DNA of 63,085 nucleotides, counting the filler, from Trichosphaerium sp. ATCC 40318 (lineage: Eukaryota; Protista; Tubulinea), in assembly GCA_038496445.1 (NCBI GenBank). It is 3 parts of 3 records of this genome, joined end to end, with 100 filler letters (N's around TTAATTAATTAA, not from the genome) between each part and the next. Parts side by side here need not be neighbours in the genome. Positions count along the whole stretch, not along the records: positions 30,404 to 51,481 come from JALMLS010000295.1; 2 more parts are not named here. The stretch is one strand, 5' to 3'. This document shows, piece after piece, positions 30,404 through 50,335 of the stretch. Below the pieces are notes generated by a model, which made no database searches, was not told the DNA's origin, and saw only the letters and a program-made list of their open reading frames with translations. Position 1 is the stretch's first letter, and each line of letters begins with the position of its first letter. The position numbers and the translations under genes were made by a program.

Positions 30404-31337
30404 CAATTTATCAACGTGGTCTTTCTGACTTTTATGAAGAAGAAAACGGACAGGGTGAAATAACACCCAAACGGCAAAGCGCGCTTGATTATCTAGGAAA
30501 TCCCCGAAAACGGAAGGCGGGCTGGCTGTAGATGCGTTGACACTTGAAGATGCTGGCGAAGATGAAAGTGGCTCATTCTCCACAACGCTTGCTCGACAAC
30601 TACAATGGCTTTCTGACCCACGTATGCAGCGCCATTTACAAAATGACGGTTTTTCTCTCGCCAAAGCCGTTCGGGAAAACTGGTCAATTTATGTTTGTAT
30701 TCCGCCCTCGCAAATTGCCCGCATGAAACGATGGATGCGCTGTCTTATACGCACGGGATTAGATGCAAAGATGCTTTCAAAAAAACAACATAAGGGGCAA
30801 CAAACGCTGTTCTTGCTTGATGAGTTTTTTGCGCTTGGAAAAATGAGTGAGATAGAAAACTCTGCCGCTTATATGGCTGGCTATGGTATCAAACTTGTAC
30901 CGGTTATTCAAAACATCGGGCAAATAAAAGAACTTTATAAAAAGAATTGGGAAACCTTCCTCGGCAATGCAGGCGCAATTATCGCTTGGGGTTTGAATGA
31001 CTTGGACACAGAAAACTATATTGCAGACCGTATCGGCAAAGCACTGACTTGGGAATTGTCGCAATCGGCTGGTTCAACCCGTACAGCAGGGCATTGGTTC
31101 AACGCATCCAGCAATAAATCGACCAGCACGTCATTGCAGGAAAGGCAAATACGTCGTTCAAATGAAATTCATATGGATGGGGCGCGAGAAACAGGGCGGG
31201 CATATATCATTCCTGCGGCATCCGCGCCATTTATGGTTATGCGACAAGAATATTTCGAGCGCTATCAAAGCGATAATATTTATGAGCCGATAGAGTTCAT
31301 TGAGCATTGGGAAGAACAATATGGCTCGCGCACCTAA
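30404..31337 (+). CDS. virD4: VirD4/TraG-like coupling protein, partial copy at contig start
   Basis: Same sequence as 43396-44333 apart from small contig-end deletions. Confidence 0.85.
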
Positions 31338-31812
31338 GCCTCCCAAAATTGATGATGATAAACCATTCCTACAATACGCCATCAAAACGGTCTTAAAATT
31401 TATCTTCATCCTATGGCTTTTTAGCCAAGCCATGGGTTTCATATTTTACGCGCTCTATCACTATACACCGATACATTTTCGGGAATTCATGTTTCGTGAT
31501 TATCTCGATTTCTGGGATAGATGGGGCGATGATGTTATGCCCGACTGGACGATGTATATTCCCACATGGAAAAGCCCATACCTTTGGGCTATAATCATTT
31601 TTTTAATTTCGATGCGTTTCTTGGCAAAACAGAAAAAGGCCACTCAACGCAATAGCTCGAGACAAAAATCATCTAGGCAAAATAAAAAATCAAGTCGGAC
31701 AAAAAGTCAAAGAAAAGCACCGCCAGATGATGACGATTTTGACTTCGATGAATCTAAATTCAAAAGCAAAAAAAGTGCGTTTCACGCATTGAGAATTTGG
31801 CGCGATGAGTGA
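31321..31812 (+). CDS. Hypothetical membrane protein (2 TM, basic/acidic tail)
   Basis: ATG at 31321 overlaps the virD4 end; two hydrophobic segments. Confidence 0.7.
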   Translation: MARAPKPPKIDDDKPFLQYAIKTVLKFIFILWLFSQAMGFIFYALYHYTPIHFREFMFRDYLDFWDRWGDDVMPDWTMYIPTWKSPYLWAIIIFLISMRFLAKQKKATQRNSSRQKSSRQNKKSSRTKSQRKAPPDDDDFDFDESKFKSKKSAFHALRIWRDE

Positions 31813-32463
31813 CAGAGGCCAAATACTTTTATCAACATTATTGGCTGGATTGCCTTCTCAATCGTAGGCATATGGTGGTCGAATATTGTACTGCGTTGGC
31901 TGTTTGCGAATGTGCTTCCCACTGCGCCAAAACAACAATGGTCTTGGTCTATCCTATCAGGTGATTTTTCCATTTTTGGCCTGTTGGGACTAACACTTTT
32001 TACATTTGCTATTTGCGCCGCAACGCTTGCGGCACTCCTGTTTATTGCCCGCGTTATTTGGGACATAGTTCTAGGCACGGTTTCAATTATCCTTGTAATT
32101 TGGGGCTTCTTTCGCAAATTGTTTGAAATACCGACCGATATATTTTTAGGACTAAGAGGCAATTCAAATGTGATGCGTTCCTACTTCTCACTAAAGCGGT
32201 TCATTCTGCGCAATGACGGCAGGGGATATCAAAAAAAGACTGAATATAAATCATCCGAAAAAGAGCAAAGGAAGGAAGAAAGACAAGAAAAAAGCTCTAA
32301 CAACAATCACCAAAGCTCGAGCGATTCATCACATTACGGTTCAGATAAACGGCACAGAGATGATGCAAAATTTTGGGCTTTTGTAGACGACCCGAACGCC
32401 TCAAATTCTGAACGTGAAACGGCATTCCGCAAAATAATGGAGCGCGAGAAAAAACGAAAGTAA
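31805..32463 (+). CDS. Same multi-TM protein with a 1-bp deletion near 31828 (probable consensus error)
   Basis: aatacttttatc here vs aatacttcttatc in the second copy. Confidence 0.65.
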
Positions 32464-32578
32464 AAGCGCTCATAGACTTAATTTCTTAAATATCGCCAAC
32501 GAAAGACGTTGCAAAATCTATCCATAACGCCCGCATACGCGACCTTAGCTGGTTAAGCCAGGTCGCGCTGCAACAGGC

Positions 32579-32905
32579 TCAATATTCCTGTGCCAGCATG
32601 ATTGTGAGAACACGGCACGTCTGTTTCGGGTCGGCAGGGTCTTCACTGCCGCGCTCCATATCTGGGGCGTAATAGTCAATCTTCCAGAAGATTTTCCCCG
32701 CGCCTGATTGCTCAAACGCTCCAAAATCATGCTCGCCATAGGGGTCGTTATCCTCGCTGAAATCATCGAAGGTTCTGACCTTGGTGATGATACTTTCCTG
32801 CACCTCGGCAGGTAGCTGGTTGATACCAACTGTCGTGAGAACTTTGCCGCCTAGGTAGGTGTTTCGCAGAAGGTCATTGAGTTGTGAAATTGTGTTTTGT
32901 GTCAT
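32579..32905 (-). CDS. DUF3768 domain protein
   Basis: LNDLLR, VRTFDDFSEDNDPYGEHDFG, IFWKIDYY and GSEDPADPKQTCRVLTIMLAQEY are the family pattern; likely ATG at 32905. Confidence 0.9.
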   Translation of the reverse strand: MTQNTISQLNDLLRNTYLGGKVLTTVGINQLPAEVQESIITKVRTFDDFSEDNDPYGEHDFGAFEQSGAGKIFWKIDYYAPDMERGSEDPADPKQTCRVLTIMLAQEY

Positions 32906-32946
32906 CGTTTTTCTTTCTGTTGCTTGGTCGGTTAATTCCAACCGTT

Positions 32947-33063
32947 GCGCCAAAAAGGGCAGTCGATGGCAGGCTCGTCATGCTCAACACGGGAGCGAAG
33001 CGAATGGAGCGGGCAGGGCATTGACGACAGCGAAGAGGCCTCGCCACGTCTGCCAAAATGCGC
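32947..33063 (+). promoter_or_regulatory. Long imperfect stem-loop, candidate Frpo-like ssDNA promoter for DUF3768 (copy at 45944-46060)
   Basis: Nested pairings gcgc/gcgc, ggcag/ctgcc, tggc/gcca, aggc/gcct, tcgtca/tgacga and tgctc/gggca; TTGACG and CAAAAT on the 3' arm. Confidence 0.65.
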
Positions 33064-33202
33064 TCAAATATGGTTGTGATTGATTGACCGAGTGAGGGTC
33101 GAAACGGTGTCAGGAAACCCAGAAGGTTCCATATATTCATTTTATGCGACAAATGAATAGCCAGTTAGAACCTGAATTGAAAACGTCCGTGAATGGCAGA
33201 GA

Positions 33203-33218
33203 TTAACCTTAAGTTAAC
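33203..33218. promoter_or_regulatory. CtrA-box-like site TTAA-N7-TTAAC (copy at 46200-46215)
   Basis: TTAACCTTAAGTTAAC about 130 bp upstream of ORF 33350. Confidence 0.5.
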
Positions 33219-33349
33219 ATTGAAAATTTAGTTTGATAGCGCCAACAGCAGGCTCAATGAAGCGACATGTCATTCGTCGCTGATACTTTTCGGTGCTGAC
33301 AAGCTTTATGACGAAGCTAAAGCAACTTTAATCTGAGGGTTTCAACGGT

Positions 33350-34048
33350 ATGACCATTATTTCGCTTATGACGCATCATGGCTCGGCACCAACTTATTCG
33401 GTTGGATACCAGCTGCCGTCGACAAACTTGAAGATGGCAAACCTTCAAAATCCGGTTGGTGGCTCCAAGGGTCTCTCGTTCAACCCAGCTGAAAATCACT
33501 CATCAAGCGCCATGGCAAAGATATTTGATATCATCGCAAACATGGACGGCGATAAAGCTGGAGGTGGCAGGTTTGGCGGACAGCTAAGCAAGAATGAAGC
33601 TGCTGCCATGAAGCAGTACAAGAATGTTGTTGAGACTGTGAACCTCACTAAAGACGATCTGGTTGAGATGATTAAAACTGGTGAATGGGCTGAAAAATAT
33701 ACAGGTGGCAATCATACAGTAGAAGAACAGGCACGTCTGGATTTAGTGCGCGATGTAGTGGCAAGTGGTGTTGCTACGGTCATTGATCTCGAAGACTGGG
33801 GATACAAGACTGAAATTTCTGGCAATATTCATTTTGATGGAGACGGCAGTTTCAGCGGTGGATCATTCTCACATATCAGAGAATACGCCCCGGGCCTGAA
33901 AAATCCGGTGACTGACAATATGGTCATGGACGGTGACAAAATCGTACGGGATGAAAACGGTTGGCCGACGGATAAAAAGACCGGTCATTATGCAACAATG
34001 ATGGCAGTTGGTGCTATTGAACTGTATATAACGTGGCCGAAAGATTGA
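33350..34048 (+). CDS. Hypothetical protein (232 aa)
   Basis: Long ORF with protein-like composition; no family recognised. Confidence 0.75.
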   Translation: MTIISLMTHHGSAPTYSVGYQLPSTNLKMANLQNPVGGSKGLSFNPAENHSSSAMAKIFDIIANMDGDKAGGGRFGGQLSKNEAAAMKQYKNVVETVNLTKDDLVEMIKTGEWAEKYTGGNHTVEEQARLDLVRDVVASGVATVIDLEDWGYKTEISGNIHFDGDGSFSGGSFSHIREYAPGLKNPVTDNMVMDGDKIVRDENGWPTDKKTGHYATMMAVGAIELYITWPKD

Positions 34049-34077
34049 GCCGGTATCCAGATTGTCCACCCTCTTAA

Positions 34078-34166
34078 AACTGTTGCAAAAACTATCCTTT
34101 TTGCAACGGTTTTTTGTGGATAACAAAATCAATCACTTGGCTGTCGCAAAATCTTGTCGCAAAATC
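34078..34166. promoter_or_regulatory. Putative res site of the serine resolvase (copy at 47075-47163)
   Basis: Inverted repeat AACTGTTGCAAAAA-N6-TTTTTGCAACGGTT and direct repeat TGTCGCAAAATC x2 just upstream of the resolvase. Confidence 0.7.
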
Positions 34167-34171
34167 ATTGC

Positions 34172-34738
34172 ATGAAAATTGGATATGCCCGCGTCTCAAC
34201 CGTTGACCAAAACCCGAACGCGCAACGTGACGCGCTGAAGCTGGCAGGGTGTGAAAAAATAGTCACCGAAAAAGTGTCGGGCGCATCCCTAAAGCGCCCA
34301 AAATTGGAAAAGCTGTTGCGCTCACTCAATTCTGGTGATGTTCTAACGGTATGGCGATTAGATAGGGTCGGTCGCTCATTGCCACATCTTCTCAATGTCG
34401 TTGCAGACCTGAAGGCGCGAGAAGTTGGTTTTCAATCGCTCAATGAAACAATCGACACAACCACGGCCAATGGTGAGCTAATCTTCCACATATTTGCATC
34501 AGTAGCGCAATTTGAACGCTCTCTGTTAGTCGAACGCACTCAGGCGGGGCTTGTGTCAGCAAAAAAGCGTGGAGTGCGTCTAGGACGGCCTCCTGCGCTT
34601 AAAACAGCGCAAATAAAACACGCCAAGAAGCTGATTGAATCGGGTGAACGGCCATCTGCTGTTGCAGCTTCTCTAGGTGTAAATCGCGCAACCCTTTACC
34701 GTGCAGTCAAAAATACTAGAAAAATGGAAACTGCTTAG
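34172..34738 (+). CDS. Serine recombinase (resolvase/invertase family)
   Basis: MKIGYARVSTVDQ, VWRLDRVGRS, LGRPP and a C-terminal HTH. Confidence 0.95.
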   Translation: MKIGYARVSTVDQNPNAQRDALKLAGCEKIVTEKVSGASLKRPKLEKLLRSLNSGDVLTVWRLDRVGRSLPHLLNVVADLKAREVGFQSLNETIDTTTANGELIFHIFASVAQFERSLLVERTQAGLVSAKKRGVRLGRPPALKTAQIKHAKKLIESGERPSAVAASLGVNRATLYRAVKNTRKMETA

Positions 34739-34999
34739 ATGAATGATGATAAATACAACCGTTCTATCAACCTGCTATGCCCCACATGCGGCGGAGACCA
34801 ATTTGAATTTGATGGAGAAGAAGCCACAGAATACAAATGCGGCTCATGCGGTTTGGAAATACAAAAAAACGCGCTTATGGAAGCCAACAGCGAGAACATA
34901 GAAGAGCATACAAAAGAGATAGGTCGGGAAATCACGAATGACCTCATGAAAAACTTTAAAAAAACGCTTGGCGGCAACAAAGGCTTTAAGTTCAAATGA
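34739..34999 (+). CDS. Small zinc-ribbon protein (resembles the ECs_2282-like putative Zn-binding family)
   Basis: CPTCG...CGSCG; ATG immediately follows the resolvase stop. Confidence 0.8.
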   Translation: MNDDKYNRSINLLCPTCGGDQFEFDGEEATEYKCGSCGLEIQKNALMEANSENIEEHTKEIGREITNDLMKNFKKTLGGNKGFKFK

Positions 35000-35487
35000 C
35001 ACCAGAACCCACGTCTTTCTTAACTATTACCGCCTCTGATATAGTCGCGCTTCTAGCCTTTTTACTTTCGGCATTCGCTGTTTGGAAGACGGCTAAATTC
35101 AATAAACGACAGGAAGCAATGATTGATAGTCAGACGGAACTAAATCAACGTCTTCTCGAGCGAGAAAAAAACGAAGATACCTCATCAAAAATGTCTGATT
35201 TGGGCGCAAATCTTATTAAGCTAGGAAGCAGTAAATATCGAGTGAAAGTGTTCAATAAGGGAAAAGCAACAGCCACAAATGTCCGCCTCATTATCATGAG
35301 CGACGATAGCCCGCTTATTCAAAGTGACATAGACGCAAAATTCCCATTTGCCACACTCGAAACGCATCAGTCAGTCGAACTGCTGGCATCTGTCCATATG
35401 AGTTCGCCAGCTAAATCAGAAATCAAGATAATATGGGATGACGATTATCAATCTAATCGAGAAAAACTGGTCTTCCTGACCCTATAG
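34996..35487 (+). CDS. Hypothetical protein: N-terminal TM, coiled coil, beta-sandwich-like C-terminus
   Basis: ATGA overlap with the Zn-finger gene; IVALLAFLLSAFAVW; VKVFNKGKATATNVRL...IKIIWDD pattern. Confidence 0.8.
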   Translation: MTPEPTSFLTITASDIVALLAFLLSAFAVWKTAKFNKRQEAMIDSQTELNQRLLEREKNEDTSSKMSDLGANLIKLGSSKYRVKVFNKGKATATNVRLIIMSDDSPLIQSDIDAKFPFATLETHQSVELLASVHMSSPAKSEIKIIWDDDYQSNREKLVFLTL

Positions 35488-35557
35488 CAAAAGTTCCGTT
35501 TCAACCTCTATCCCGCATAGCCAGCTGTAACGGCAAAATAATTATCGGATTATTACA

Positions 35558-36112
35558 ATGTCGAAGGACGAAAAAATTGAAATAATACAATTGCTCAATG
35601 AGATTTTCTCAAACGTGAATGGATGGCTCCATTTTGCGGAGGCGAAAAATGGGCTCTTAACAACCATAAATATTGCTATCGTTACAGCATGCTTTAGTTT
35701 TCTTTCGAGTGAAAACTACACAAATTTGTACTTTGTTTTCTATGTATTTGTTCTTGGTTGTTTTTCTGCTTTTTCAGCAGTAGTTGGCATATTTTCATTT
35801 TTTCCTAGAGTTAAATTATTCAGGAACTCTGGAAATAACAGCAGCTCGCCCGTCGGAAACATCTATTTTTTTGGTGACATCGAAAAACTTGGTGTAGATA
35901 ATTTTATTAAATCTGTTTTCGACAAGACTAATACCTCACGACCGCCACATGCATATGAGGAAGACCTTGCACAACAAATTGTTGTAAATTCTAAAATTGC
36001 TTCAAAAAAATATGAGCTTTTCACTCTTTCGCTATGGCTCACACTTTCCGCTTTTATTACACCTGTATTAGCATTCCTCTGTTATCGGATATTTATTGAT
36101 GAAGCTCTCTGA
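35558..36112 (+). CDS. pycTM: Pycsar transmembrane effector (PycTM/DUF5706-like)
   Basis: WLHFAEAKNGLL, two TMs ending in FFPR, NIYFFGDI, QQIVVNSKIASKKY and a third TM; overlaps the cyclase gene. Confidence 0.88.
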   Translation: MSKDEKIEIIQLLNEIFSNVNGWLHFAEAKNGLLTTINIAIVTACFSFLSSENYTNLYFVFYVFVLGCFSAFSAVVGIFSFFPRVKLFRNSGNNSSSPVGNIYFFGDIEKLGVDNFIKSVFDKTNTSRPPHAYEEDLAQQIVVNSKIASKKYELFTLSLWLTLSAFITPVLAFLCYRIFIDEAL

Positions 36113-36962
36113 AATTTTAGCCGATAGGCAAAATACTGGTCTACTAGAAATGGCTGCTCGCGCAGTCGAAGGGCTTAGGTCAGATTCAGTTCAGAAAATT
36201 ATTGATGAAGAGGTCAGCTTTTTCAATCAAGGCGCTAAAATAACCACACAAAATAAGATACCGAGCACTACACAAATTCCAATTGAAAACCCAAACAATT
36301 GGATAAAAATTCCAGATGTCATTGCATGTTATGTCGACATGGAAGGGTCAACTCGGTTGAGTGCCACAACACATGAGAACAGTACTGCAAAGACGTACCG
36401 ACTATTTACAGCAACAGCAATTAAGATGTTTCATCACTTTGAAGCAGCTTATATCGACGTTAAAGGTGACGGGGTATTTGCTCTATTTGACGCAGATAAG
36501 ACCTACACAGCTTTAGCTGCAACCGTTTCGTTTAAGACATTTGTACATAATGAATTCACTCCAAAAGTTAAGAGTAAAATCGATATGTCTATTGGCGGTC
36601 ACTTCGGGATTGATAGACGCGCAGTTTTAGTTCGTAAACTTGGTTTAAAGTTTCATGGTGGACGCACAGATAGGCAAAATGAAGTTTGGGCAGGAAAACC
36701 TGTTAACATGGCGGCTAAACTGGCAAGTCAATCTACCGACGATACACTGCTAATATCTGACCGTTATTATAAAACTATAAACAACGAAAAGGCGCGCATG
36801 AGCTGCGGATGTCCTGATGGCGAACCCTCTGACCTCTGGTCTAAATTAGACGTGTCAAAGGATGATAAGTTTGATTTTGACACAGCCTATTCTTTAGGCA
36901 GCAATTGGTGCGCAACGCATGGTAAAAAGTTCTGTAGCGACCTCGTGAAACTAGATGAATAA
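36099..36962 (+). CDS. pycC: Class III nucleotide cyclase, Pycsar PycC-like
   Basis: Metal-binding YVDMEGST and KGDGVFALF; VWAGKPVNMAAKLAS (N-x3-K); paired with the TM effector. Confidence 0.85.
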   Translation: MKLSEILADRQNTGLLEMAARAVEGLRSDSVQKIIDEEVSFFNQGAKITTQNKIPSTTQIPIENPNNWIKIPDVIACYVDMEGSTRLSATTHENSTAKTYRLFTATAIKMFHHFEAAYIDVKGDGVFALFDADKTYTALAATVSFKTFVHNEFTPKVKSKIDMSIGGHFGIDRRAVLVRKLGLKFHGGRTDRQNEVWAGKPVNMAAKLASQSTDDTLLISDRYYKTINNEKARMSCGCPDGEPSDLWSKLDVSKDDKFDFDTAYSLGSNWCATHGKKFCSDLVKLDE

Positions 36963-36994
36963 GTTTTATTACACTACCAGCAATGCGCCAGAAT

Positions 36995-37327
36995 CTAAAC
37001 CAATCTTGGCTGCGGTTCAATTTTCGCCACGGCTTCATAGCGTGAAACTTTGATGTCCCCTGCCCGCTTGCGTGCTTGCGCAATGTCGTAGCTGTTCTGC
37101 ATACGCATTAGTGTGTCCATGGGAACACCAAACGCCTTTTCGAGCCGTACAGCCATTTCTGGCGACAATGCAGCCTTCTCATTGAGCAAAGCCGATAACG
37201 CTGCTCTGGTCACGCCAAGCGCAGCCGCTCCTGCCGTCACAGAAAGGTCGGCGGGTTCAATAATTTCGGTTTTTACAAATCCACCAACATGCGGCGGATT
37301 TTGTAATCTGTAGTTTCCATCGGTCAT
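36995..37327 (-). CDS. higA: HigA-family antitoxin (HTH)
   Basis: PPHVGGFVKTEII, LGVTRAALSALLNEKAALSPEMAVRLEKAFG and MQNSYD; SD AGGAGG before ATG 37327. Confidence 0.93.
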   Translation of the reverse strand: MTDGNYRLQNPPHVGGFVKTEIIEPADLSVTAGAAALGVTRAALSALLNEKAALSPEMAVRLEKAFGVPMDTLMRMQNSYDIAQARKRAGDIKVSRYEAVAKIEPQPRLV

Positions 37328-37338
37328 AATATCCTCCT

Positions 37339-37629
37339 TCAATGGTAATCTTCATAGTCGAGGTCGATAATCTCAATCTCGGTTTCATGGATGAAAAACG
37401 TAATGCGCCAATTGCGCGACACAAACAGGCTCCAAGTACCCTTACGAGCGCCCTTTAACTGGTGAGCCTTCCAGCTCGAAAACACCCGTAGTTCTTCAGG
37501 GCTTTGCATGTCTTGCAAAAACGCCAGTATTTTGCGGATTTTGTCGATATATTCTGGCGGCAAGCCCGACACATCATCGGCCTCTAGTAAACGCCGTAAC
37601 CCTTTGTGTTTTACATTCGCTATTTTCAT
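37339..37629 (-). CDS. higB: HigB (RelE/ParE superfamily) toxin
   Basis: KHKGLRRL, HQLKGARKGTWSLFVSRNWRITF and DYEDYH; toxin-first gene order. Confidence 0.93.
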   Translation of the reverse strand: MKIANVKHKGLRRLLEADDVSGLPPEYIDKIRKILAFLQDMQSPEELRVFSSWKAHQLKGARKGTWSLFVSRNWRITFFIHETEIEIIDLDYEDYH

Positions 37630-37636
37630 TAGGTTT

Positions 37637-37680
37637 ATAATATCAGCTTATGAAGAGGTGCGTCAAGTGTAACGTTACAC
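37637..37680 (-). promoter_or_regulatory. higBA promoter (TTGACG-18-TATTAT) with adjacent perfect palindrome GTGTAACGTTACAC
   Basis: -35 at 37666-37661, -10 at 37642-37637, palindrome at 37667-37680. Confidence 0.6.
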
Positions 37681-38194
37681 TGTACACTTATTATTTACCC
37701 CCGTATCTGCCTTACACCCCTTCCCTGCCAAGTAATTTGTTGGGTGGGGTCGAAGGGAATTTTCCATCGCTTGGTAAGAACTAACCGATAGACCCTGAAT
37801 TCCTTTTTTTGAAAGCTGGTAGCTTAAATTTCTCTGCTTTTCGGAGCCGCTTTCGCTTGAGTGTTCTTCTGGTGCACAGGGGGAAATGTCAAAAGCAGTA
37901 GCGTAGCGACTTTTGATATTTTCACATAGGTGACAGATGATAAACGTCGAAAGAGGCGTGAGGCATAGAAATTTTCTATCTGCTTTTTGGTGAGCGAGAG
38001 CGAGACAACTACTATAACTGATTTGCCTGCGCTGCGTTAGCAGCGCCGAATAGGCAAATTCCACTTATGTCAGGCGAAGCCTGTCCTTTTAAGGCTTTTC
38101 GCTACGCTAGAAGCCCTTTCTTTTCTACTTATTACTTTTACTTCTTCTTAGTAGGGGGAATTTCTAAATTATTTCAATATGTTGCGCGTTTAGA

Positions 38195-38520
38195 TATAAC
38201 ATATTGGTGCTTAACCGCTTACATATTGGGTGGTTCACGATAACGATTCGGGTGATTCGGCACTACATATTGGGTGGTTCACGATAACATATTGGGGAGG
38301 TCAATTATAACATATTGGGTGAGATATAACATATTGGGTGATAGTTTTGGCATAGGTATAACAAATTGGGTGACTTGTTATGGCAAGACATAACATATTG
38401 GGTGGTTTGTTATGTCCCTGTGAGTGAATAGGTCGAATTTTCTTGTTCATCCTATAACTATAACATAAATTGTGATTCATGTTATGGGTTGATAATCAAC
38501 CTATCACCCAATTTGTTATG
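38195..38520. repeat. Iteron array / replication origin (consensus ATAACATATTGGGTG, ~9 direct copies plus one inverted copy just before rep); partial copy ~51188-51481
   Basis: Repeats visible directly upstream of the Rep_3 gene, with an AT-rich flank at ~38120-38190. Confidence 0.88.
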
Positions 38521-38527
38521 GCTAAAT

Positions 38528-39406
38528 ATGGATTATAAACCGCGCGAGAAAAGAGATTACGGCTCACTTGATGTTAAGCCCAACGCGGGTGAAATGATTA
38601 AGCCAGCCGAAACGATTGATATCGTCGGTGTCGAAAACCTCACCCTGCAAGATAAACGCGTTTGGAACGCCCTTATAGCAAACGCACACGGGCCAAACAT
38701 GCGTGAGGTAGGCAGAGACTTCAAAATAGACTTAACGCCTCTACGGGCAAACCATAACGGCAATGAGCGCATAGAAGATACAATCGAACGGCTCATGAAG
38801 ACGATTGCAGTCTGCCACATGCCAAATGGCTCTGTGACGCGGTTTCAGCTTCTGGGCGGCAATAACATGGGTGACCCGATGCGCCCGCGTGGTGAGCTAA
38901 CCTACAGCTTTGATAAGCGCCTCACTGAGGTTTTAAGCTCGTCAATCAGCTTTGGTAAGCTGGAGCTATCGGTTATGGCCGCTTTCAACAGCAAGTACGC
39001 CCTCGCCCTTTATGAACACGTTGCCCGCCGCATCAATATGAAATCATATGCTGTGCAAGAATACACCGTTGATGAAGTGCGCGATATCTTAGGTGTTGGC
39101 CCAAAGCAGCTAAAGGCATTTGGCAATCTCAAGCAAAGGGCACTCGTCCCTGCCCTAGAAGAAGTCAATTATTGGGCTGATTTTCGCGTTGCTCTGTCTT
39201 ACAAAAAAACAGGTCAGCGCGTGACGGGAATTTGTATGACTTGGCATTACAAAGACAGAGAAAGTCGCGCCAGAGCGAAGGCGGAGCTGGACAAGTCCCG
39301 CGACGGTCGCAAGGCGAGAATGAAAAACATCACGGAAACAATCGTCATTTTGCAGGACGACCCGTTGCTTGGCTTAAACAGCGAGAGCTTGTTTGAGAAC
39401 GATTAG
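38528..39406 (+). CDS. repA: Plasmid replication initiator, Rep_3 family
   Basis: LTLQDKRVWNALIANA, FNSKYALALYE, DEVRDILGV and FGNLKQRALVPALEEVN; follows the iterons. Confidence 0.9.
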   Translation: MDYKPREKRDYGSLDVKPNAGEMIKPAETIDIVGVENLTLQDKRVWNALIANAHGPNMREVGRDFKIDLTPLRANHNGNERIEDTIERLMKTIAVCHMPNGSVTRFQLLGGNNMGDPMRPRGELTYSFDKRLTEVLSSSISFGKLELSVMAAFNSKYALALYEHVARRINMKSYAVQEYTVDEVRDILGVGPKQLKAFGNLKQRALVPALEEVNYWADFRVALSYKKTGQRVTGICMTWHYKDRESRARAKAELDKSRDGRKARMKNITETIVILQDDPLLGLNSESLFEND

Positions 39407-40507: not shown

Positions 40508-41926
40508 CTAATGCTCACGTTTCCGCACACGCCCTTTGCGTTTGCGTCCTTTTCGCGCTTCACGGTTAAATTCAGCACGTTGCTGGCCGTTTGAAGGCTC
40601 CTGAGCCGCTTTCGTCTCTTTGCGGGTGGATTGCGTCGCTTCGGCCACCTTGAACGCTCTGGTGCGCTCCTGCTTGCGAGTACGCCACATGCGTTGCAGT
40701 GCGGTTTTCTCGCCGTCCTGCTTGTCCTTCAAAAGCTGCCTGCGATTATCAAAATTCTGCCGCATGCGGGCAAGGGCGCTTTGTTGGTCAATCTTCACTT
40801 GTCCAATGGCCGCGTTAATATCGGCCTTCTGCTCGATGTTGGCTTTGCGCCATTCAGCATTATGCGCTCTGTCCAACTCGGCGCGTCTGGCTTTTGAGCT
40901 GATTAGGAAATTAAACAGGCTGGTCGGCTTGCCTCCTTCTTCTCGGCCAAGTGCTTTTGAGGCAGAGGCGGCAGCAATGGCATTTTCGAGCTTGCCGAGC
41001 ATACGCTTCTCACGTTTCTCGAAGGCTTTGACTTCTCGATATTGCCGTTTGGCAATTTCCGAGCGCAAAGGCTTATGGTCGGCCTTTACATCAGCGATTG
41101 CCTTTTGAAACGGAGTAGGGGATGCGCCCCGATTGTAAACCGCTTTCTTTGCGTCCGCGTAGTCGCGTGAGTAGGCCTGCCACTCGTGCGAATGACGCGA
41201 ATGCATCTTCTGGCCATAAGCGGCTAAATCCGCGTCCTTGGCCTTCTGTGCCTCTTTCAGCTTCAGAATATCATTATCGTTTGAATGACCAAGCACTTCA
41301 GCCTGGTCTTTCAAATGATAGGGCTTGTCGCCCTTGGCCGAGAAGCTCTCACCAAGGTCGCGGCGCTTCCAATTCTCAACGCGGTTTTCGCAATAAATCT
41401 GGCCGCGTTCCTGCTCGTAAGACATAGCCCATTTGGAAAGCCGTTCCTGATACTTCCACAAGTCCAGCATTTTGCCATGGTCGGGATTAACGCGGTTTAT
41501 CACCACATGCACATGCGGGTGCTTGGTGTCATTGTGCGCAATGATAGCGGCCTGATAGCCTTCCGCGCCAAGCGCACGAAGGCTCTCATCTGCCGCCCGC
41601 AACATTTCAGATTTGCTCAGGCGGTCTTTCTCGTCGGGATGCCAGCCGAGCGAATAATGAAAAACCACCTTATCGGATTTGTTGCCGGCTGCGGATTGTC
41701 CAGCCTCGCGCTTAAGCGCGTCCTGCTGGTTGGCCGTTGCCCGCATGATGCGATAAGCCAAGTCGGGATTGTCGGTCGCAAGATTCCGAAACTCCGTCCA
41801 GTCTACGCGCTCGGCTGTGTCATTCGCAGCCTGACCTTCAAGGCGCTTGTCGTGCTGTAAGTAGGCAAACACGCCCTTGAAACTCGTGCCAGTGGCGCGG
41901 CCTTTGGTGGCAGCTTTAGGTGTCAT
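40508..41926 (-). CDS. Relaxase, MOB_P/VirD2-like, with long helical C-terminus
   Basis: SFKGVFAYLQ (catalytic Tyr), VFHYSLGWHPDE and AHNDTKHPHVHVVINRV (HUH). Confidence 0.93.
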   Translation of the reverse strand: MTPKAATKGRATGTSFKGVFAYLQHDKRLEGQAANDTAERVDWTEFRNLATDNPDLAYRIMRATANQQDALKREAGQSAAGNKSDKVVFHYSLGWHPDEKDRLSKSEMLRAADESLRALGAEGYQAAIIAHNDTKHPHVHVVINRVNPDHGKMLDLWKYQERLSKWAMSYEQERGQIYCENRVENWKRRDLGESFSAKGDKPYHLKDQAEVLGHSNDNDILKLKEAQKAKDADLAAYGQKMHSRHSHEWQAYSRDYADAKKAVYNRGASPTPFQKAIADVKADHKPLRSEIAKRQYREVKAFEKREKRMLGKLENAIAAASASKALGREEGGKPTSLFNFLISSKARRAELDRAHNAEWRKANIEQKADINAAIGQVKIDQQSALARMRQNFDNRRQLLKDKQDGEKTALQRMWRTRKQERTRAFKVAEATQSTRKETKAAQEPSNGQQRAEFNREARKGRKRKGRVRKREH

Positions 41927-42275
41927 AGGCCGCTCCCACTTTGGCAAGAACAGCGCGTAGCTCGGCCACCGCTTCATCCATGTCATGGGGAAGACCGTGG
42001 CCGCGATTAACACCCTTCGCAATCTGGTTCAGATTCACGCCAGTGCGGTTGAGTTCCAAAAGCATTTTGTCCTCAACAACGCTTGCGCGAGGAGCAACCT
42101 TGCGGCGGGTGGCAATCGAACGGATATATTCAGAAACGCTCAATCCTGCGGTCGCAGCTTGAGCTTCAATGAATGACATTTCTTCGGGATTAACGCGGAT
42201 AGAGGGTAGGGCAAGTGTCCTTGCTTGCCCTGCTGCCTTCATAGGCCGTCCGCGTTTTTTACCTGTGTCAGTCAT
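41916..42275 (-). CDS. mobC: MobC relaxosome accessory protein
   Basis: IRVNPEE...AGLSVSEYIR and ELNRTGVNLNQIAK; overlaps the relaxase start. Confidence 0.92.
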   Translation of the reverse strand: MTDTGKKRGRPMKAAGQARTLALPSIRVNPEEMSFIEAQAATAGLSVSEYIRSIATRRKVAPRASVVEDKMLLELNRTGVNLNQIAKGVNRGHGLPHDMDEAVAELRAVLAKVGAAYDT

Positions 42276-42317
42276 GTCCGTTTCGTCAATTTCCAATTGG
42301 CGCTTCTAAGCTGGTTT

Positions 42318-42375
42318 GAAGGGGTGGCGCTAGACCCCTCACAAGATTTAATGCATCGCATTAAACCATCTTGCT
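42318..42375 (+). other. Putative oriT with RP4-type nic (CATCTTG^C at 42367-42374)
   Basis: Hairpin AGGGGT-N8-ACCCCT and inverted repeat TTAATGC-atc-GCATTAA just 5' of CATCTTGC; upstream of mobC. Confidence 0.72.
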
Positions 42376-42800: not shown

Positions 42801-44333
42801 ATGAATGACGATGAAATGTTCGGTTTTGCCGATAAAGCCGCACTTAAACAATATAGCGAAACCTCATCATCATTCCTGCTTGGTAAAGCGCATCAAGACC
42901 ACGGTACAAGTCTTCAACTTGGCATCAATGACGATAGACATTTATTTATCATAGCAGGTTCTCGTAGTGGCAAAGGCACGTCCATGATTATTCCCAATCT
43001 GCTACATTGGCAGGGCGGTGTATTCTGCATCGACCCAAAGGGCGAGAATGCTGCAGTCACTGCGATAAGACGCGGGACAACCAAACAAGCGAAAGGGACG
43101 GGAACAAGCGTTCGAAAATTCCTAGACCACAAAGTCGCGATTCTCGACCCTATGGGGGCAGTTAAAGGCGCGGCAAAAACCTACAAAACAAACTATGACC
43201 CATTAAGCGATATTGATATCGGCAGCGATGATGAAGTCGGCCAAATCCTATCAATCGGTGAGGCCGTCGTCATGTCTGACAGTGAGGGAGAAACCCATTG
43301 GACAGACAGTGCCCGTATCGTCTTCTGCGGCATCATTGAAGCTGTCATCCATACCGAAAAAAACAAAGCCAACCACACTCTAACTTTCTGTCGTTCAATT
43401 TATCAACGTGGTCTTTCTGACTTTTATGAAGAAGAAAACGGACAGGGTGAAATAACACCCAAACGGCAAAGCGCGCTTGATTATCTAAGGAAATCCCCGA
43501 AAACGGAAGGCGGGCTGGCTGTAGATGCGTTGACACTTCTTGAAGATGCTGGCGAAGATGAAAGTGGCTCATTCTCCACAACGCTTGCTCGACAACTACA
43601 ATGGCTTTCTGACCCACGTATGCAGCGCCATTTACAAAATGACGGTTTTTCTCTCGCCAAAGCCGTTCGGGAAAACTGGTCAATTTATGTTTGTATTCCG
43701 CCCTCGCAAATTGCCCGCATGAAACGATGGATGCGCTGTCTTATACGCACGGGATTAGATGCAAAGATGCTTTCAAAAAAACAACATAAGGGGCAACAAA
43801 CGCTGTTCTTGCTTGATGAGTTTTTTGCGCTTGGAAAAATGAGTGAGATAGAAAACTCTGCCGCTTATATGGCTGGCTATGGTATCAAACTTGTACCGGT
43901 TATTCAAAACATCGGGCAAATAAAAGAACTTTATAAAAAGAATTGGGAAACCTTCCTCGGCAATGCAGGCGCAATTATCGCTTGGGGTTTGAATGACTTG
44001 GACACAGAAAACTATATTGCAGACCGTATCGGCAAAGCACTGACTTGGGAATTGTCGCAATCGGCTGGTTCAACCCGTACAGCAGGGCATTGGTTCAACG
44101 CATCCAGCAATAAATCGACCAGCACGTCATTGCAGGAAAGGCAAATACGTCGTTCAAATGAAATTCATATGGATGGGGCGCGAGAAACAGGGCGGGCATA
44201 TATCATTCCTGCGGCATCCGCGCCATTTATGGTTATGCGACAAGAATATTTCGAGCGCTATCAAAGCGATAATATTTATGAGCCGATAGAGTTCATTGAG
44301 CATTGGGAAGAACAATATGGCTCGCGCACCTAA
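42801..44333 (+). CDS. virD4: Type IV coupling protein, VirD4/TraG family, without N-terminal TM helices
   Basis: Walker A AGSRSGKGT, IDPKGE, Walker B FLLDEF and VIQNIGQIKELY. Confidence 0.92.
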   Translation: MNDDEMFGFADKAALKQYSETSSSFLLGKAHQDHGTSLQLGINDDRHLFIIAGSRSGKGTSMIIPNLLHWQGGVFCIDPKGENAAVTAIRRGTTKQAKGTGTSVRKFLDHKVAILDPMGAVKGAAKTYKTNYDPLSDIDIGSDDEVGQILSIGEAVVMSDSEGETHWTDSARIVFCGIIEAVIHTEKNKANHTLTFCRSIYQRGLSDFYEEENGQGEITPKRQSALDYLRKSPKTEGGLAVDALTLLEDAGEDESGSFSTTLARQLQWLSDPRMQRHLQNDGFSLAKAVRENWSIYVCIPPSQIARMKRWMRCLIRTGLDAKMLSKKQHKGQQTLFLLDEFFALGKMSEIENSAAYMAGYGIKLVPVIQNIGQIKELYKKNWETFLGNAGAIIAWGLNDLDTENYIADRIGKALTWELSQSAGSTRTAGHWFNASSNKSTSTSLQERQIRRSNEIHMDGARETGRAYIIPAASAPFMVMRQEYFERYQSDNIYEPIEFIEHWEEQYGSRT

Positions 44334-44808
44334 GCCTCCCAAAATTGATGATGATAAACCATTCCTACAATACGCCATCAAAACGGTCTTAAAATTTATC
44401 TTCATCCTATGGCTTTTTAGCCAAGCCATGGGTTTCATATTTTACGCGCTCTATCACTATACACCGATACATTTTCGGGAATTCATGTTTCGTGATTATC
44501 TCGATTTCTGGGATAGATGGGGCGATGATGTTATGCCCGACTGGACGATGTATATTCCCACATGGAAAAGCCCATACCTTTGGGCTATAATCATTTTTTT
44601 AATTTCGATGCGTTTCTTGGCAAAACAGAAAAAGGCCACTCAACGCAATAGCTCGAGACAAAAATCATCTAGGCAAAATAAAAAATCAAGTCGGACAAAA
44701 AGTCAAAGAAAAGCACCGCCAGATGATGACGATTTTGACTTCGATGAATCTAAATTCAAAAGCAAAAAAAGTGCGTTTCACGCATTGAGAATTTGGCGCG
44801 ATGAGTGA
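44317..44808 (+). CDS. Hypothetical membrane protein (second copy)
   Basis: Identical repeat copy. Confidence 0.7.
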   Translation: MARAPKPPKIDDDKPFLQYAIKTVLKFIFILWLFSQAMGFIFYALYHYTPIHFREFMFRDYLDFWDRWGDDVMPDWTMYIPTWKSPYLWAIIIFLISMRFLAKQKKATQRNSSRQKSSRQNKKSSRTKSQRKAPPDDDDFDFDESKFKSKKSAFHALRIWRDE

Positions 44809-45460
44809 CAGAGGCCAAATACTTCTTATCAACATTATTGGCTGGATTGCCTTCTCAATCGTAGGCATATGGTGGTCGAATATTGTACTGCGTTGGCTGT
44901 TTGCGAATGTGCTTCCCACTGCGCCAAAACAACAATGGTCTTGGTCTATCCTATCAGGTGATTTTTCCATTTTTGGCCTGTTGGGACTAACACTTTTTAC
45001 ATTTGCTATTTGCGCCGCAACGCTTGCGGCACTCCTGTTTATTGCCCGCGTTATTTGGGACATAGTTCTAGGCACGGTTTCAATTATCCTTGTAATTTGG
45101 GGCTTCTTTCGCAAATTGTTTGAAATACCGACCGATATATTTTTAGGACTAAGAGGCAATTCAAATGTGATGCGTTCCTACTTCTCACTAAAGCGGTTCA
45201 TTCTGCGCAATGACGGCAGGGGATATCAAAAAAAGACTGAATATAAATCATCCGAAAAAGAGCAAAGGAAGGAAGAAAGACAAGAAAAAAGCTCTAACAA
45301 CAATCACCAAAGCTCGAGCGATTCATCACATTACGGTTCAGATAAACGGCACAGAGATGATGCAAAATTTTGGGCTTTTGTAGACGACCCGAACGCCTCA
45401 AATTCTGAACGTGAAACGGCATTCCGCAAAATAATGGAGCGCGAGAAAAAACGAAAGTAA
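44801..45460 (+). CDS. Hypothetical multi-TM protein with charged C-terminal domain (219 aa)
   Basis: Overlaps the upstream gene; about 3 hydrophobic segments; intact in this copy. Confidence 0.75.
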   Translation: MSDRGQILLINIIGWIAFSIVGIWWSNIVLRWLFANVLPTAPKQQWSWSILSGDFSIFGLLGLTLFTFAICAATLAALLFIARVIWDIVLGTVSIILVIWGFFRKLFEIPTDIFLGLRGNSNVMRSYFSLKRFILRNDGRGYQKKTEYKSSEKEQRKEERQEKSSNNNHQSSSDSSHYGSDKRHRDDAKFWAFVDDPNASNSERETAFRKIMEREKKRK

Positions 45461-45575
45461 AAGCGCTCATAGACTTAATTTCTTAAATATCGCCAACGAA
45501 AGACGTTGCAAAATCTATCCATAACGCCCGCATACGCGACCTTAGCTGGTTAAGCCAGGTCGCGCTGCAACAGGC

Positions 45576-45902
45576 TCAATATTCCTGTGCCAGCATGATT
45601 GTGAGAACACGGCACGTCTGTTTCGGGTCGGCAGGGTCTTCACTGCCGCGCTCCATATCTGGGGCGTAATAGTCAATCTTCCAGAAGATTTTCCCCGCGC
45701 CTGATTGCTCAAACGCTCCAAAATCATGCTCGCCATAGGGGTCGTTATCCTCGCTGAAATCATCGAAGGTTCTGACCTTGGTGATGATACTTTCCTGCAC
45801 CTCGGCAGGTAGCTGGTTGATACCAACTGTCGTGAGAACTTTGCCGCCTAGGTAGGTGTTTCGCAGAAGGTCATTGAGTTGTGAAATTGTGTTTTGTGTC
45901 AT
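45576..45902 (-). CDS. DUF3768 domain protein (second copy)
   Basis: Identical repeat copy. Confidence 0.9.
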   Translation of the reverse strand: MTQNTISQLNDLLRNTYLGGKVLTTVGINQLPAEVQESIITKVRTFDDFSEDNDPYGEHDFGAFEQSGAGKIFWKIDYYAPDMERGSEDPADPKQTCRVLTIMLAQEY

Positions 45903-46346
45903 CGTTTTTCTTTCTGTTGCTTGGTCGGTTAATTCCAACCGTTGCGCCAAAAAGGGCAGTCGATGGCAGGCTCGTCATGCTCAACACGGGAGCGAAGCGA
46001 ATGGAGCGGGCAGGGCATTGACGACAGCGAAGAGGCCTCGCCACGTCTGCCAAAATGCGCTCAAATATGGTTGTGATTGATTGACCGAGTGAGGGTCGAA
46101 ACGGTGTCAGGAAACCCAGAAGGTTCCATATATTCATTTTATGCGACAAATGAATAGCCAGTTAGAACCTGAATTGAAAACGTCCGTGAATGGCAGAGAT
46201 TAACCTTAAGTTAACATTGAAAATTTAGTTTGATAGCGCCAACAGCAGGCTCAATGAAGCGACATGTCATTCGTCGCTGATACTTTTCGGTGCTGACAAG
46301 CTTTATGACGAAGCTAAAGCAACTTTAATCTGAGGGTTTCAACGGT

Positions 46347-47045
46347 ATGACCATTATTTCGCTTATGACGCATCATGGCTCGGCACCAACTTATTCGGTT
46401 GGATACCAGCTGCCGTCGACAAACTTGAAGATGGCAAACCTTCAAAATCCGGTTGGTGGCTCCAAGGGTCTCTCGTTCAACCCAGCTGAAAATCACTCAT
46501 CAAGCGCCATGGCAAAGATATTTGATATCATCGCAAACATGGACGGCGATAAAGCTGGAGGTGGCAGGTTTGGCGGACAGCTAAGCAAGAATGAAGCTGC
46601 TGCCATGAAGCAGTACAAGAATGTTGTTGAGACTGTGAACCTCACTAAAGACGATCTGGTTGAGATGATTAAAACTGGTGAATGGGCTGAAAAATATACA
46701 GGTGGCAATCATACAGTAGAAGAACAGGCACGTCTGGATTTAGTGCGCGATGTAGTGGCAAGTGGTGTTGCTACGGTCATTGATCTCGAAGACTGGGGAT
46801 ACAAGACTGAAATTTCTGGCAATATTCATTTTGATGGAGACGGCAGTTTCAGCGGTGGATCATTCTCACATATCAGAGAATACGCCCCGGGCCTGAAAAA
46901 TCCGGTGACTGACAATATGGTCATGGACGGTGACAAAATCGTACGGGATGAAAACGGTTGGCCGACGGATAAAAAGACCGGTCATTATGCAACAATGATG
47001 GCAGTTGGTGCTATTGAACTGTATATAACGTGGCCGAAAGATTGA
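46347..47045 (+). CDS. Hypothetical protein (second copy)
   Basis: Identical repeat copy. Confidence 0.75.
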   Translation: MTIISLMTHHGSAPTYSVGYQLPSTNLKMANLQNPVGGSKGLSFNPAENHSSSAMAKIFDIIANMDGDKAGGGRFGGQLSKNEAAAMKQYKNVVETVNLTKDDLVEMIKTGEWAEKYTGGNHTVEEQARLDLVRDVVASGVATVIDLEDWGYKTEISGNIHFDGDGSFSGGSFSHIREYAPGLKNPVTDNMVMDGDKIVRDENGWPTDKKTGHYATMMAVGAIELYITWPKD

Positions 47046-47168
47046 GCCGGTATCCAGATTGTCCACCCTCTTAAAACTGTTGCAAAAACTATCCTTTTTG
47101 CAACGGTTTTTTGTGGATAACAAAATCAATCACTTGGCTGTCGCAAAATCTTGTCGCAAAATCATTGC

Positions 47169-47735
47169 ATGAAAATTGGATATGCCCGCGTCTCAACCGT
47201 TGACCAAAACCCGAACGCGCAACGTGACGCGCTGAAGCTGGCAGGGTGTGAAAAAATAGTCACCGAAAAAGTGTCGGGCGCATCCCTAAAGCGCCCAAAA
47301 TTGGAAAAGCTGTTGCGCTCACTCAATTCTGGTGATGTTCTAACGGTATGGCGATTAGATAGGGTCGGTCGCTCATTGCCACATCTTCTCAATGTCGTTG
47401 CAGACCTGAAGGCGCGAGAAGTTGGTTTTCAATCGCTCAATGAAACAATCGACACAACCACGGCCAATGGTGAGCTAATCTTCCACATATTTGCATCAGT
47501 AGCGCAATTTGAACGCTCTCTGTTAGTCGAACGCACTCAGGCGGGGCTTGTGTCAGCAAAAAAGCGTGGAGTGCGTCTAGGACGGCCTCCTGCGCTTAAA
47601 ACAGCGCAAATAAAACACGCCAAGAAGCTGATTGAATCGGGTGAACGGCCATCTGCTGTTGCAGCTTCTCTAGGTGTAAATCGCGCAACCCTTTACCGTG
47701 CAGTCAAAAATACTAGAAAAATGGAAACTGCTTAG
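47169..47735 (+). CDS. Serine recombinase (second copy)
   Basis: Identical repeat copy. Confidence 0.95.
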   Translation: MKIGYARVSTVDQNPNAQRDALKLAGCEKIVTEKVSGASLKRPKLEKLLRSLNSGDVLTVWRLDRVGRSLPHLLNVVADLKAREVGFQSLNETIDTTTANGELIFHIFASVAQFERSLLVERTQAGLVSAKKRGVRLGRPPALKTAQIKHAKKLIESGERPSAVAASLGVNRATLYRAVKNTRKMETA

Positions 47736-48484: not shown

Positions 48485-48554
48485 CAAAAGTTCCGTTTCA
48501 ACCTCTATCCCGCATAGCCAGCTGTAACGGCAAAATAATTATCGGATTATTACA

Positions 48555-49959: not shown

Positions 49960-49991
49960 GTTTTATTACACTACCAGCAATGCGCCAGAAT

Positions 49992-50324: not shown

Positions 50325-50335
50325 AATATCCTCCT

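Follow-up and report, generated by a model that had tools for sequence, protein, structure and literature searches.

A conserved hairpin family of plasmid leading regions, with a candidate single-stranded DNA promoter in front of a DUF3768 gene

We analysed a 63,085-nt stretch of DNA (the window) from the assembly GCA_038496445.1 of Trichosphaerium sp. ATCC 40318, part of which represents a circular plasmid carrying a gene of the DUF3768 family. The DNA upstream of this gene can fold into a long hairpin, which is one copy of a large, previously undescribed family of conserved hairpins, most likely located in the leading regions of conjugative and mobilizable elements. That it is a conserved, strand-specific element of leading regions acting as folded DNA we regard as very probable. 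We further propose that it is probably a promoter functioning only while the incoming plasmid is single-stranded, a new Frpo-like class not homologous to Frpo. This proposal draws on the conservation of the element, its covariation and strand asymmetry, the genes associated with it and its orientation with respect to the relaxase gene, from which we infer the transfer polarity, the binding of RNA polymerase, the transcription start, the restriction of activity to single-stranded DNA (ssDNA), the function of DUF3768 and a role of the apical core.

The plasmid was compared by BLAST with 80 loci encoding relatives of DUF3768. In distant loci the hairpin apex, approximately 50 nt at 32977-33026, was 84-92% identical to that of the window, compared with only ~74% for the DUF3768 coding sequence. 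On the sense strand, the element consists of an invariant GCCCGCTCCATTC, a hairpin of 7-16 nt, an invariant TCCCGTGT and a closing stem, which varies in sequence and keeps its pairing. The core pattern was found in at least 120 metagenome contigs and, in a BLAST search of the 72,556 plasmids of PLSDB, in 25 plasmids, where it always lies in unannotated spacers; only 8 viral contigs contained it. All PLSDB matches are alphaproteobacterial or betaproteobacterial records, and their hosts include Phaeobacter, Leisingera, Ruegeria, Mesorhizobium, Rhizobium, Xanthobacter, Ancylobacter, Methylorubrum and Variovorax. Alphaproteobacteria predominate among the hosts, and soil, peat and marine metagenomes are rich in the element. 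No relevant match was obtained in Rfam 15 (E up to 10 for the window, E up to 1 for nine other members), and literature searches, including one for an ArdC-linked hairpin, found no description of the element. The element and DUF3768 also occur together on contigs binned as Nitrospirales, Scalindua, Trueperaceae and Anaerolineae metagenome-assembled genomes (L032, L037, L018, L026, L033), indicating either a wide host range or mis-binned plasmid contigs.

To assess the fold, we used an alignment of 56 distinct sequences with 18 proposed pairs and 500 shuffles. Standard pairs occupied 83.2% of the cells, compared with 69.0 ± 1.0% in the shuffles and 34-52% for slid partners, and the covariation score was 0.319 versus 0.113 ± 0.011. 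None of the 500 shuffles reached the observed pairing or covariation. Thirteen of the pairs had changed on both sides, and the inner hairpin, P2, which varies from 7 to 16 nt, is always still a hairpin. In folds of 188 nt centred on the core, the core caps a stem whose arms measure 60-70 nt each; the median z was -3.0, with 72% of the values below -2 (n = 120). After removal of the apex, the arms paired better with their own partners than with swapped ones (median -28.1 versus -21.6 kcal/mol; Mann-Whitney p 4e-27). A sequence-only reading of the window had named covarying hairpins upstream of DUF3768 homologues as a check on its proposal, and a conserved, covarying fold is indeed present there.

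For the window itself, the same reading had described a stem at 32947-33063 (+) with TTGACG and CAAAAT 27 nt apart on its 3′ arm, a loop-out of 10 nt shortening this distance and a -10 box within an A-rich bubble. Both boxes are present at this spacing, and the stem is the minimum-free-energy (MFE) fold of the region as DNA. In this fold, CAGCGAAGAG is bulged out and an internal loop places AAAAT across from CAAAAAG; with the bulge taken out, the spacing is exactly 17 nt (Table 1). The stem represents the middle part of a longer hairpin, whose core shares the top covariance-model score (78.7 bits). From a model based on the hairpin geometry, transcription would start near 32945, ~7 nt beyond the -10 on the paired arm, and the predicted 5′ untranslated region contains a local hairpin (GGTTGG..CCGACC) and a purine-rich Shine-Dalgarno-like tract. 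The linear distance of 27 nt between -35 and -10 is shared with the close relatives (L107, L003 and marine contigs), in each of which a bulge directly after the -35 leaves 17 nt. The block AAAATGCGCTCAAATATGGTTGT, which is unpaired or on the non-template side, is kept in all three close relatives, and the adjoining stem sequence diverges. Changes in the arms relative to L003, the nearest diverged relative, preserve pairing (GGCAG/CTGCC in the window, GCGCTCGAT/ATCGAGCGC in L003). DNA contigs yielded only a few variants; through one of them, 32963 T>G in marine contigs, the + strand gains a G.T pair in place of a T.T mismatch. Homology to the relatives (L003 and the marine/macroalgal contigs X1 and X2) stops at the hairpin base, at ~33095-33110, so that hairpin and gene behave as a module shuffled between backbones.

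Statistics on the single sequence gave a different picture from the comparison. The fold of 32947-33063 had an energy of -21.8 kcal/mol versus -20.2 ± 2.7 kcal/mol for shuffles (z -0.59; 59 of 200 shuffles were as stable), z was about 0 for the 188-nt version, -1.22 for the other strand of the hairpin region and -0.91 for the whole 444-nt intergenic region, and an inverted-repeat finder did not report the arms. We consider the hairpin of the window real because of the comparative evidence, i.e. conservation, covariation and family-wide features, and not because of these values. They would also be expected if the family were real and the copy of the window were decaying or inactive, with DUF3768 expressed otherwise. 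Its z is near 0, its arms, being AT-rich, pair at only -14.7 kcal/mol, the weakest value of the set, and its -10 is displaced by 10 nt, giving the linear spacer of 27 nt. A decaying copy would, however, hardly be expected to share the top covariance-model score, to keep the bulge and AAAATGCGCTCAAATATGGTTGT in common with L107, L003 and the marine contigs, to show compensatory arm changes relative to L003 and to return to exactly 17 nt upon removal of the bulge. Furthermore, a consensus scan of 32400-33400 found no sigma70-like promoter for double-stranded DNA (dsDNA) and no terminator on either strand, leaving DUF3768 without an alternative promoter there. We therefore regard decay of this copy as unlikely.

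The features resembling a promoter are confined to one strand. Arm positions were counted from the TTG of the closing stem on the 3′ arm of the template strand, i.e. the strand that would serve as template for the downstream gene. TTGAC was found on this arm in 57% of the members versus 7% on the mirror arm. At the place of the -10, GC[CT]A occurred in 42% (mirror arm 5%, shuffles 6%), nAnnnT with a spacer of 15-19 nt in 49.5% (mirror arm 6.7%, shuffles 15%) and TAnnnT (TAGGGT, TATGGT; spacer 16) in 16% (mirror arm 0%, shuffles 2.6%), and an A was present at arm position 24 in 54% versus 8%. These boxes resemble those of Caulobacter RpoD, whose consensus is TTGaCgS and GCtANAWC (PMC8144410). 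The folds predicted for the members have a paired -35 in 82-91%; pairing falls from 78% at arm position 23 to 38% at position 24, the -11-like A, and a second open region covers positions 35-39, where transcription would start. The opposite (template) arm is purine-rich at the places of the boxes and of the bubble, and consequently the sense strand is there a pyrimidine tract with almost no A.

Most members carry -35 and -10 at a normal linear spacing of 16-17 nt. The idea of a spacing switch, in which the fold restores the distance between the boxes, therefore has to be divided: it agrees with the predicted folds of the window and its close relatives (27 to 17 nt) and fails as a principle of the family, where removal of bulges on the 3′ arm rescued a -10 in 8 of 106 members. 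We rejected it as a family rule and regard it as a lineage trait of the close relatives of the window and a few others. For the window copy, the sequence suggests that this switch would keep the promoter silent in dsDNA.

Mismatches in the stem also distinguish the two strands. In Watson-Crick-only folds, which make the test strand-neutral, 1x1 mismatches of the template strand comprised 42 G.T and 7 A.C, where base composition predicts a ratio of 0.89 (p 2.6e-8), and 247 purine-purine mismatches compared with 48 pyrimidine-pyrimidine ones. The mismatches of the template strand are thus of the stable kinds. This bears on a different interpretation, namely a cis-regulatory RNA leader, riboswitch-like or protein-binding, transcribed together with the downstream gene from an upstream promoter. 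Co-orientation with the gene at a fixed distance, a hairpin of variable length and covariation are typical of such RNA motifs, and the sense strand could form an invariant G.T pair. A sense RNA would, however, contain C.A and pyrimidine-pyrimidine mismatches (7 G.U versus 42 A.C), the promoter boxes lie on the other strand, homology ends at the hairpin base with no conserved promoter upstream, and no Rfam family corresponds to the element. An RNA leader is therefore very unlikely. Readings of the element as attC site, terminator or operator were rejected as well: the core lacks symmetry, the arms covary in the absence of a conserved sequence, and there is neither a T-run nor a linked integrase.

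The element is tightly associated with genes of a particular kind. In 119 of 127 instances a co-oriented open reading frame (ORF) starts at a median of 88 nt after the core (interquartile range 81-98); the remaining 8 run off the contig end. These ORFs fall into 37 families. Pfam assigned 28 of them to ArdC, 7 to N6/N4 DNA methylases, 7 to DUF3768 (in addition to operons with a small leader gene), 5 to ParB_N, 4 to DUF6876 and one each to ArdA and DUF2958, while 18 belong to a small protein family without a Pfam name. The same set of genes has been reported for leading regions (PMC11541004). Covariance-model matches in DUF3768 loci were on the strand of DUF3768 in 21 of 21 cases. In the six loci with 2-3 copies all copies have the same orientation (6/6); the metagenome contigs L126 and L088, each with three such copies within 6-13 kb, look like multi-promoter anti-defence islands consisting mostly of genes of no assigned function. 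Small ORFs of 65-88 aa without a Pfam family often come first after the element, directly before a methylase or DUF3768 gene (e.g. L081 12148-12384, L082 15146-15361, L204 9144-9341, L209 6128-6325, L208 6136-6345, and L001/L012/L025/L044 at about 5750-6000). They group in clusters of 7-18 members and may be unrecognised leading-region proteins or translational leaders. In the metagenome contig L103 the first ORF after the element, at a distance of 251 nt, encodes an IS200-like Y1 transposase (1403-1831, -), which probably inserted between the element and the gene it originally preceded; such transposases also act on ssDNA hairpins.

These arrangements have to be compared with the possibility that the hairpin is mainly a single-strand initiation signal, at which RNA polymerase or primase primes the complementary strand, with gene expression as a secondary effect. 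The hairpin, its strand specificity and the boxes resembling a promoter would look the same, and the invariant apical core could be the recognition site of a priming protein. Frpo itself has been described as serving both transcription and primer synthesis (PMC12672017), and in this respect priming overlaps with the promoter function proposed here. A pure priming site, however, needs neither the tight spacing to a co-oriented start codon nor several copies per locus, each before its own gene. Priming as the main function thus appears improbable, with some room left for it.

Orientation relative to the transfer genes is equally uniform. The relaxase gene is co-oriented with the element in all 11 loci holding both, usually 1.5-8 kb downstream, and also in the annotated plasmids L204, L206 and L207, giving 14 of 14; of 23 pairs with the coupling-protein gene, 21 have this gene in the opposite orientation. 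In the 12 annotated cases, the window included, the upstream gene is divergent in six, and in the other six a co-oriented gene ends 60-1000 nt upstream. Divergent genes, together with antisense-strand boxes that are normally spaced in the linear sequence of about half of the members and a fold that is also on this strand, would fit a role in dsDNA, either as an outward promoter for a divergent gene or antisense transcript or as source of a FinP-like antisense RNA repressing the downstream gene. Outward transcription would be antisense to the co-oriented gene found just upstream in half of these annotated cases, and the boxes can therefore not generally serve a divergent gene. Covarying arms of 50-70 nt would be superfluous for a plain promoter, an antisense RNA would require a promoter inside unrelated coding regions, and the orientation toward the relaxase gene would be left unexplained. 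We give a dsDNA or antisense role very little credence.

In the window, the motif CATCTTGC occurs once, at 42367-42374 (+), where about one occurrence is expected by chance. It lies 71 nt upstream of the nikA-like gene, immediately after a perfect inverted repeat of 8 bp (42347-42365); the adjoining genes encode a NikA-like protein and a TraI/MobA(P)-like relaxase. Inverted repeat, nic-like motif and nikA-like gene represent the usual layout of an origin of transfer (oriT), which we predict here. The nic consensus of MOBP systems is YATCCTG^Y, located a few nt after an inverted repeat on the transferred strand (T-strand), and CCATCTTG^C presumably differs from it by one mismatch. The nic-like site is thus found on the + strand, where the sequence-only reading had placed it. 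The distance of 3.2 kb to DUF3768 given in that reading holds because the plasmid is circular and was assembled as 1.62 tandem copies, so that it is the second copy of DUF3768 that lies 3.2 kb from oriT (Table 1). Relaxase genes enter last in the well-studied MOBP and MOBF systems. With the inverted repeat and the YATCCTG-like motif on the + strand, and a MOBP-type relaxase gene that would enter last, the + strand is the predicted T-strand, again in line with the earlier proposal. Given last entry of the relaxase gene, the leading region would contain the element together with its genes, all pointing toward oriT, and the transferred strand would be their template. The window agrees with this arrangement, with inverted repeat and nic-like motif both located on the + strand and DUF3768 following on the - strand 3.2 kb further. 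A short nic motif was found on the expected strand in several related loci; it is too short to count and was not used.

The following sequence of events would account for these data. Upon nicking at the predicted oriT (42373/42374, +), the + strand would enter the recipient with its 5′ end first and, ~3.2 kb in, fold back on itself. The 3′ arm would act as a non-template-like strand presenting a paired -35 (TTGACG) and a -10-like box, CAAAAT in the window and GCTAnnnT in most relatives, with the -11 adenine in a mismatch or bubble. Host sigma70 RNA polymerase might bind this duplex mimic, move toward the stem base and read on into DUF3768 with the + strand as template, ahead of complementary-strand synthesis; in Frpo, polymerase on the hairpin arm likewise runs toward the stem base into the downstream gene (PMC9849209). 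Conversion to dsDNA would destroy the hairpin and leave no promoter in the sense direction, and expression would therefore be a brief burst in fresh transconjugants. The proposal of the sequence-only reading, a T-strand hairpin rebuilding a sigma70-type promoter into a leading-region gene, finds good comparative support in the family, its orientation, the boxes and the strand of the G.T mismatches.

Several points weigh against a promoter restricted to ssDNA. The stability of the window's hairpin does not stand out (z -0.6 to 0; -28 kcal/mol over 188 nt), and the mining of enterobacterial ssDNA promoters used a threshold of -75 kcal/mol, which demands far more than the stability seen here (PMC12672017). 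The -10 is weakly conserved, with the strict TAnnnT limited to the 16% given above. At normal linear spacing, the boxes could also fire in the opposite direction in dsDNA, pointing away from the downstream gene. Early counts of G.T versus A.C in P1 and P2 from a crude alignment were 63:68 and 3:6, and those from the RNAalifold table for P1/P2 were 4:9. The template strand was more stable by MFE in 113 of 120 instances; base composition explains most of this advantage (-3.4 of -5.4 kcal/mol in shuffles), and we rejected the asymmetry in MFE as evidence. The nic site and the transfer polarity are predictions, a search of sequencing runs found no RNA run holding this plasmid, and a simple promoter model offers no function for the invariant apical core.

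This apical core might have a function of its own. In its internal loop, GGA lies opposite GAATGGAG on the folded strand, an arrangement invariant across very different hosts, and the loop may be a protein-binding or tertiary-structure site. As a tentative and rather doubtful extension, we suggest that the core of the transferred strand (ACACGGGA, P2 hairpin and GAATGGAGCGGGC) is a specific docking site for a conserved protein switching on a regulon of early genes on incoming ssDNA. The partner could be the alpha or sigma subunit of RNA polymerase, SSB (which binds single-stranded DNA), primase or ArdC itself, and either host-encoded or co-transferred. If so, the family would be a regulated class of ssDNA promoters, distinct in principle from a simple duplex mimic. 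The core would also provide a sequence tag for dozens of uncharacterised, early-expressed anti-defence genes on environmental plasmids and integrative and conjugative elements, including DUF3768, DUF6876, DUF2958 and the 18-member small-protein family.

Experimentally supported ssDNA promoters have so far come only from enterobacterial IncF/IncI plasmids and comprise Frpo/ssi and two further classes (PMC12672017). The Frpo/ssi1-3 elements of F and ColIb-P9/IncI1 (class 1) are, like the new element, long imperfect T-strand hairpins that rebuild -35 and -10 (PMC9849209, PMC11541004, PMC12672017). They too lie upstream of leading-region genes with the T-strand as template and can occur in several copies of the same orientation, and for both silencing by conversion to dsDNA is expected. 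The term Frpo-like, as used in the sequence-only reading, is thus appropriate for the mechanism but not for the sequence: PLSDB blastn, IncF and IncI plasmids included, matched only alpha- and betaproteobacterial records and revealed no homology to Frpo or the ssi of ColIb-P9. Compared with these elements, the new one falls far short in both length and stability (median about -45 kcal/mol over 188 nt; window -28), contains an invariant GC-rich apical core and a variable P2 instead of an A+T-rich UP region, has a -10 of the alphaproteobacterial GCtA type, and is associated with other hosts and other cargo (ArdC, DUF3768, DUF6876, DUF2958). The ssDNA promoters of classes 2 and 3 (pESBL/F; upstream of klcA, ardA and M.EcoGIX) demonstrate that hairpin classes without homology to each other can take this role ahead of anti-restriction and methylase genes (PMC12672017). 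Those are enterobacterial and were validated in transconjugants by 5′ rapid amplification of cDNA ends, whereas the family described here was defined in silico; its conserved apical motif has not been reported for classes 2 and 3.

Folded ssDNA with promoter-like boxes for host RNA polymerase is also known from the ssoA-type single-strand origins of rolling-circle plasmids, which are strand- and orientation-specific like the new element. Such origins make a short lagging-strand primer and are not known to lie at a fixed distance before protein genes, and the plasmids with the new element are of the theta type (Rep3, RepABC, RepA). Integron attC sites share with it imperfect inverted repeats that fold as ssDNA next to diverse gene cassettes, with structure conserved over arm sequence. 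They lie, however, downstream of the cassettes, carry R/L boxes and need the integron integrase, whereas the new element is found upstream, its distance to the start codon being fixed, with a strongly conserved apical sequence and no linked integrase. If our proposal is correct, ssDNA promoters extend to Rhizobiales, Rhodobacterales and many soil, peat and marine elements, and transcription from incoming ssDNA would be a general strategy of conjugative elements. It would further offer a simple sequence tag for early-expressed anti-defence genes of environmental plasmids, and the mismatched -11 adenine together with the bubble at the start site suggests a pre-melted promoter design. DUF3768, an orphan fold, would gain a concrete, testable role.

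The gene downstream of the hairpin was confirmed as DUF3768 (PF12599; 119.4 bits versus a cutoff of 25, E 6.7e-35). Its AlphaFold2 model has a pLDDT of 94.7 and found no fold match in the PDB (all TM below 0.31, E above 0.1); PDB sequences gave no functional lead, AFDB clusters matched were DUF3768 and unnamed ones only, and a literature search on DUF3768 retrieved no paper. The protein is acidic, with a pI of 4.3 in the window, a family median of 4.7 and a net charge of about -7.5. Because its element is shared with ArdC, ArdA, orphan methylases and ParB-like genes, DUF3768 is most likely an early establishment or anti-defence protein. The sequence-only reading had suggested such a role, for which there is now comparative support.

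By self-BLAST, positions 30404-51481 correspond to a circular plasmid of ~12,997 bp; 30404-38488 and 43396-51481 are 99.84% identical, with 2 mismatches and 6 small gaps. These differences look like long-read errors, and the indels alter ORF calls (31912-32463, 183 aa, versus 44801-45460, 219 aa). The coupling protein gene lies between oriT and DUF3768 in the orientation opposite to DUF3768. Searches of PLSDB with the whole region for near and distant relatives of the entire plasmid found none. The features are listed in Table 1.

Table 1. Features of the hairpin region and of the plasmid, in positions of the window
Feature	Position	Strand	Basis or remark
DUF3768 gene	32579-32905	-	ATG at 32905, stop 32579-32581; 108 aa
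Predicted 5′ untranslated region	32906-32946	-	Hairpin geometry
Full extended hairpin	32930-33094	+ (template, predicted T-strand)	MFE fold of 188-nt stretch
Covariance-model match to apical element (P1 stem, internal loops, P2 hairpin)	32951-33034	-	cmsearch 78.7 bits, E 6e-21
Invariant core: ACACGGGA, P2 hairpin GCGAAGC (32995-33001), GAATGGAGCGGGC	32987-33014	+	Invariant columns in 56 sequences
-35-like TTGACG, 3′ arm, paired with 32976-32981	33021-33026	+	Sequence and fold
Spacer bulge CAGCGAAGAG, 10 nt	33028-33037	+	MFE folds of window, L107 and L003 all bulge here
Candidate -10 CAAAAT, AAAAT unpaired opposite CAAAAAG (32951-32957)	33054-33059	+	Fold
Rep3 initiator	38489-39406	+	
MobA/VirD2 relaxase gene, MOBP-type	40508-42022	-	Pfam, NCBIfam; co-oriented with hairpin element and DUF3768
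NikA/MobC-like accessory gene	41916-42296	-	Pfam, NCBIfam; co-oriented with hairpin element and DUF3768
Intergenic oriT region	Between accessory gene and coupling protein gene		
Predicted oriT core: TTTAATGC-ATC-GCATTAAA, then CCATCTTG^C	42347-42374	+	Inverted repeat and nic-like motif
Type IV coupling protein gene	42801-44333	+	Pfam T4SS-DNA_transf, E 2.8e-59
Two genes without assigned function	44296-44808 and 44801-45460	both +	
DUF3768, second assembly copy	45576-45902	-	Same as 32579-32905
Second copy of DUF3768 and hairpin	45576-46091	-	Self-BLAST; covariance-model match at 45948-46031 (cmsearch)
Divergent gene without assigned function, 232 aa	46347-47045	+	
Resolvase	47151-47735	+	
Pycsar pair (PycTM and PycC)	48555-49959	+	
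HigBA: HigB-like toxin and HTH antitoxin	49992-50626	-	

This small mobilizable plasmid also carries a complete Pycsar anti-phage system. PADLOC identified a PycTM effector with two transmembrane segments (2TM; 48555-49109, +; E 2e-40) and a PycC cyclase (49093-49959, +; E 1e-111), the latter having been missed by Pfam and NCBIfam. A small ORF at 34739-34999 encodes a zinc ribbon of the TFIIB type.

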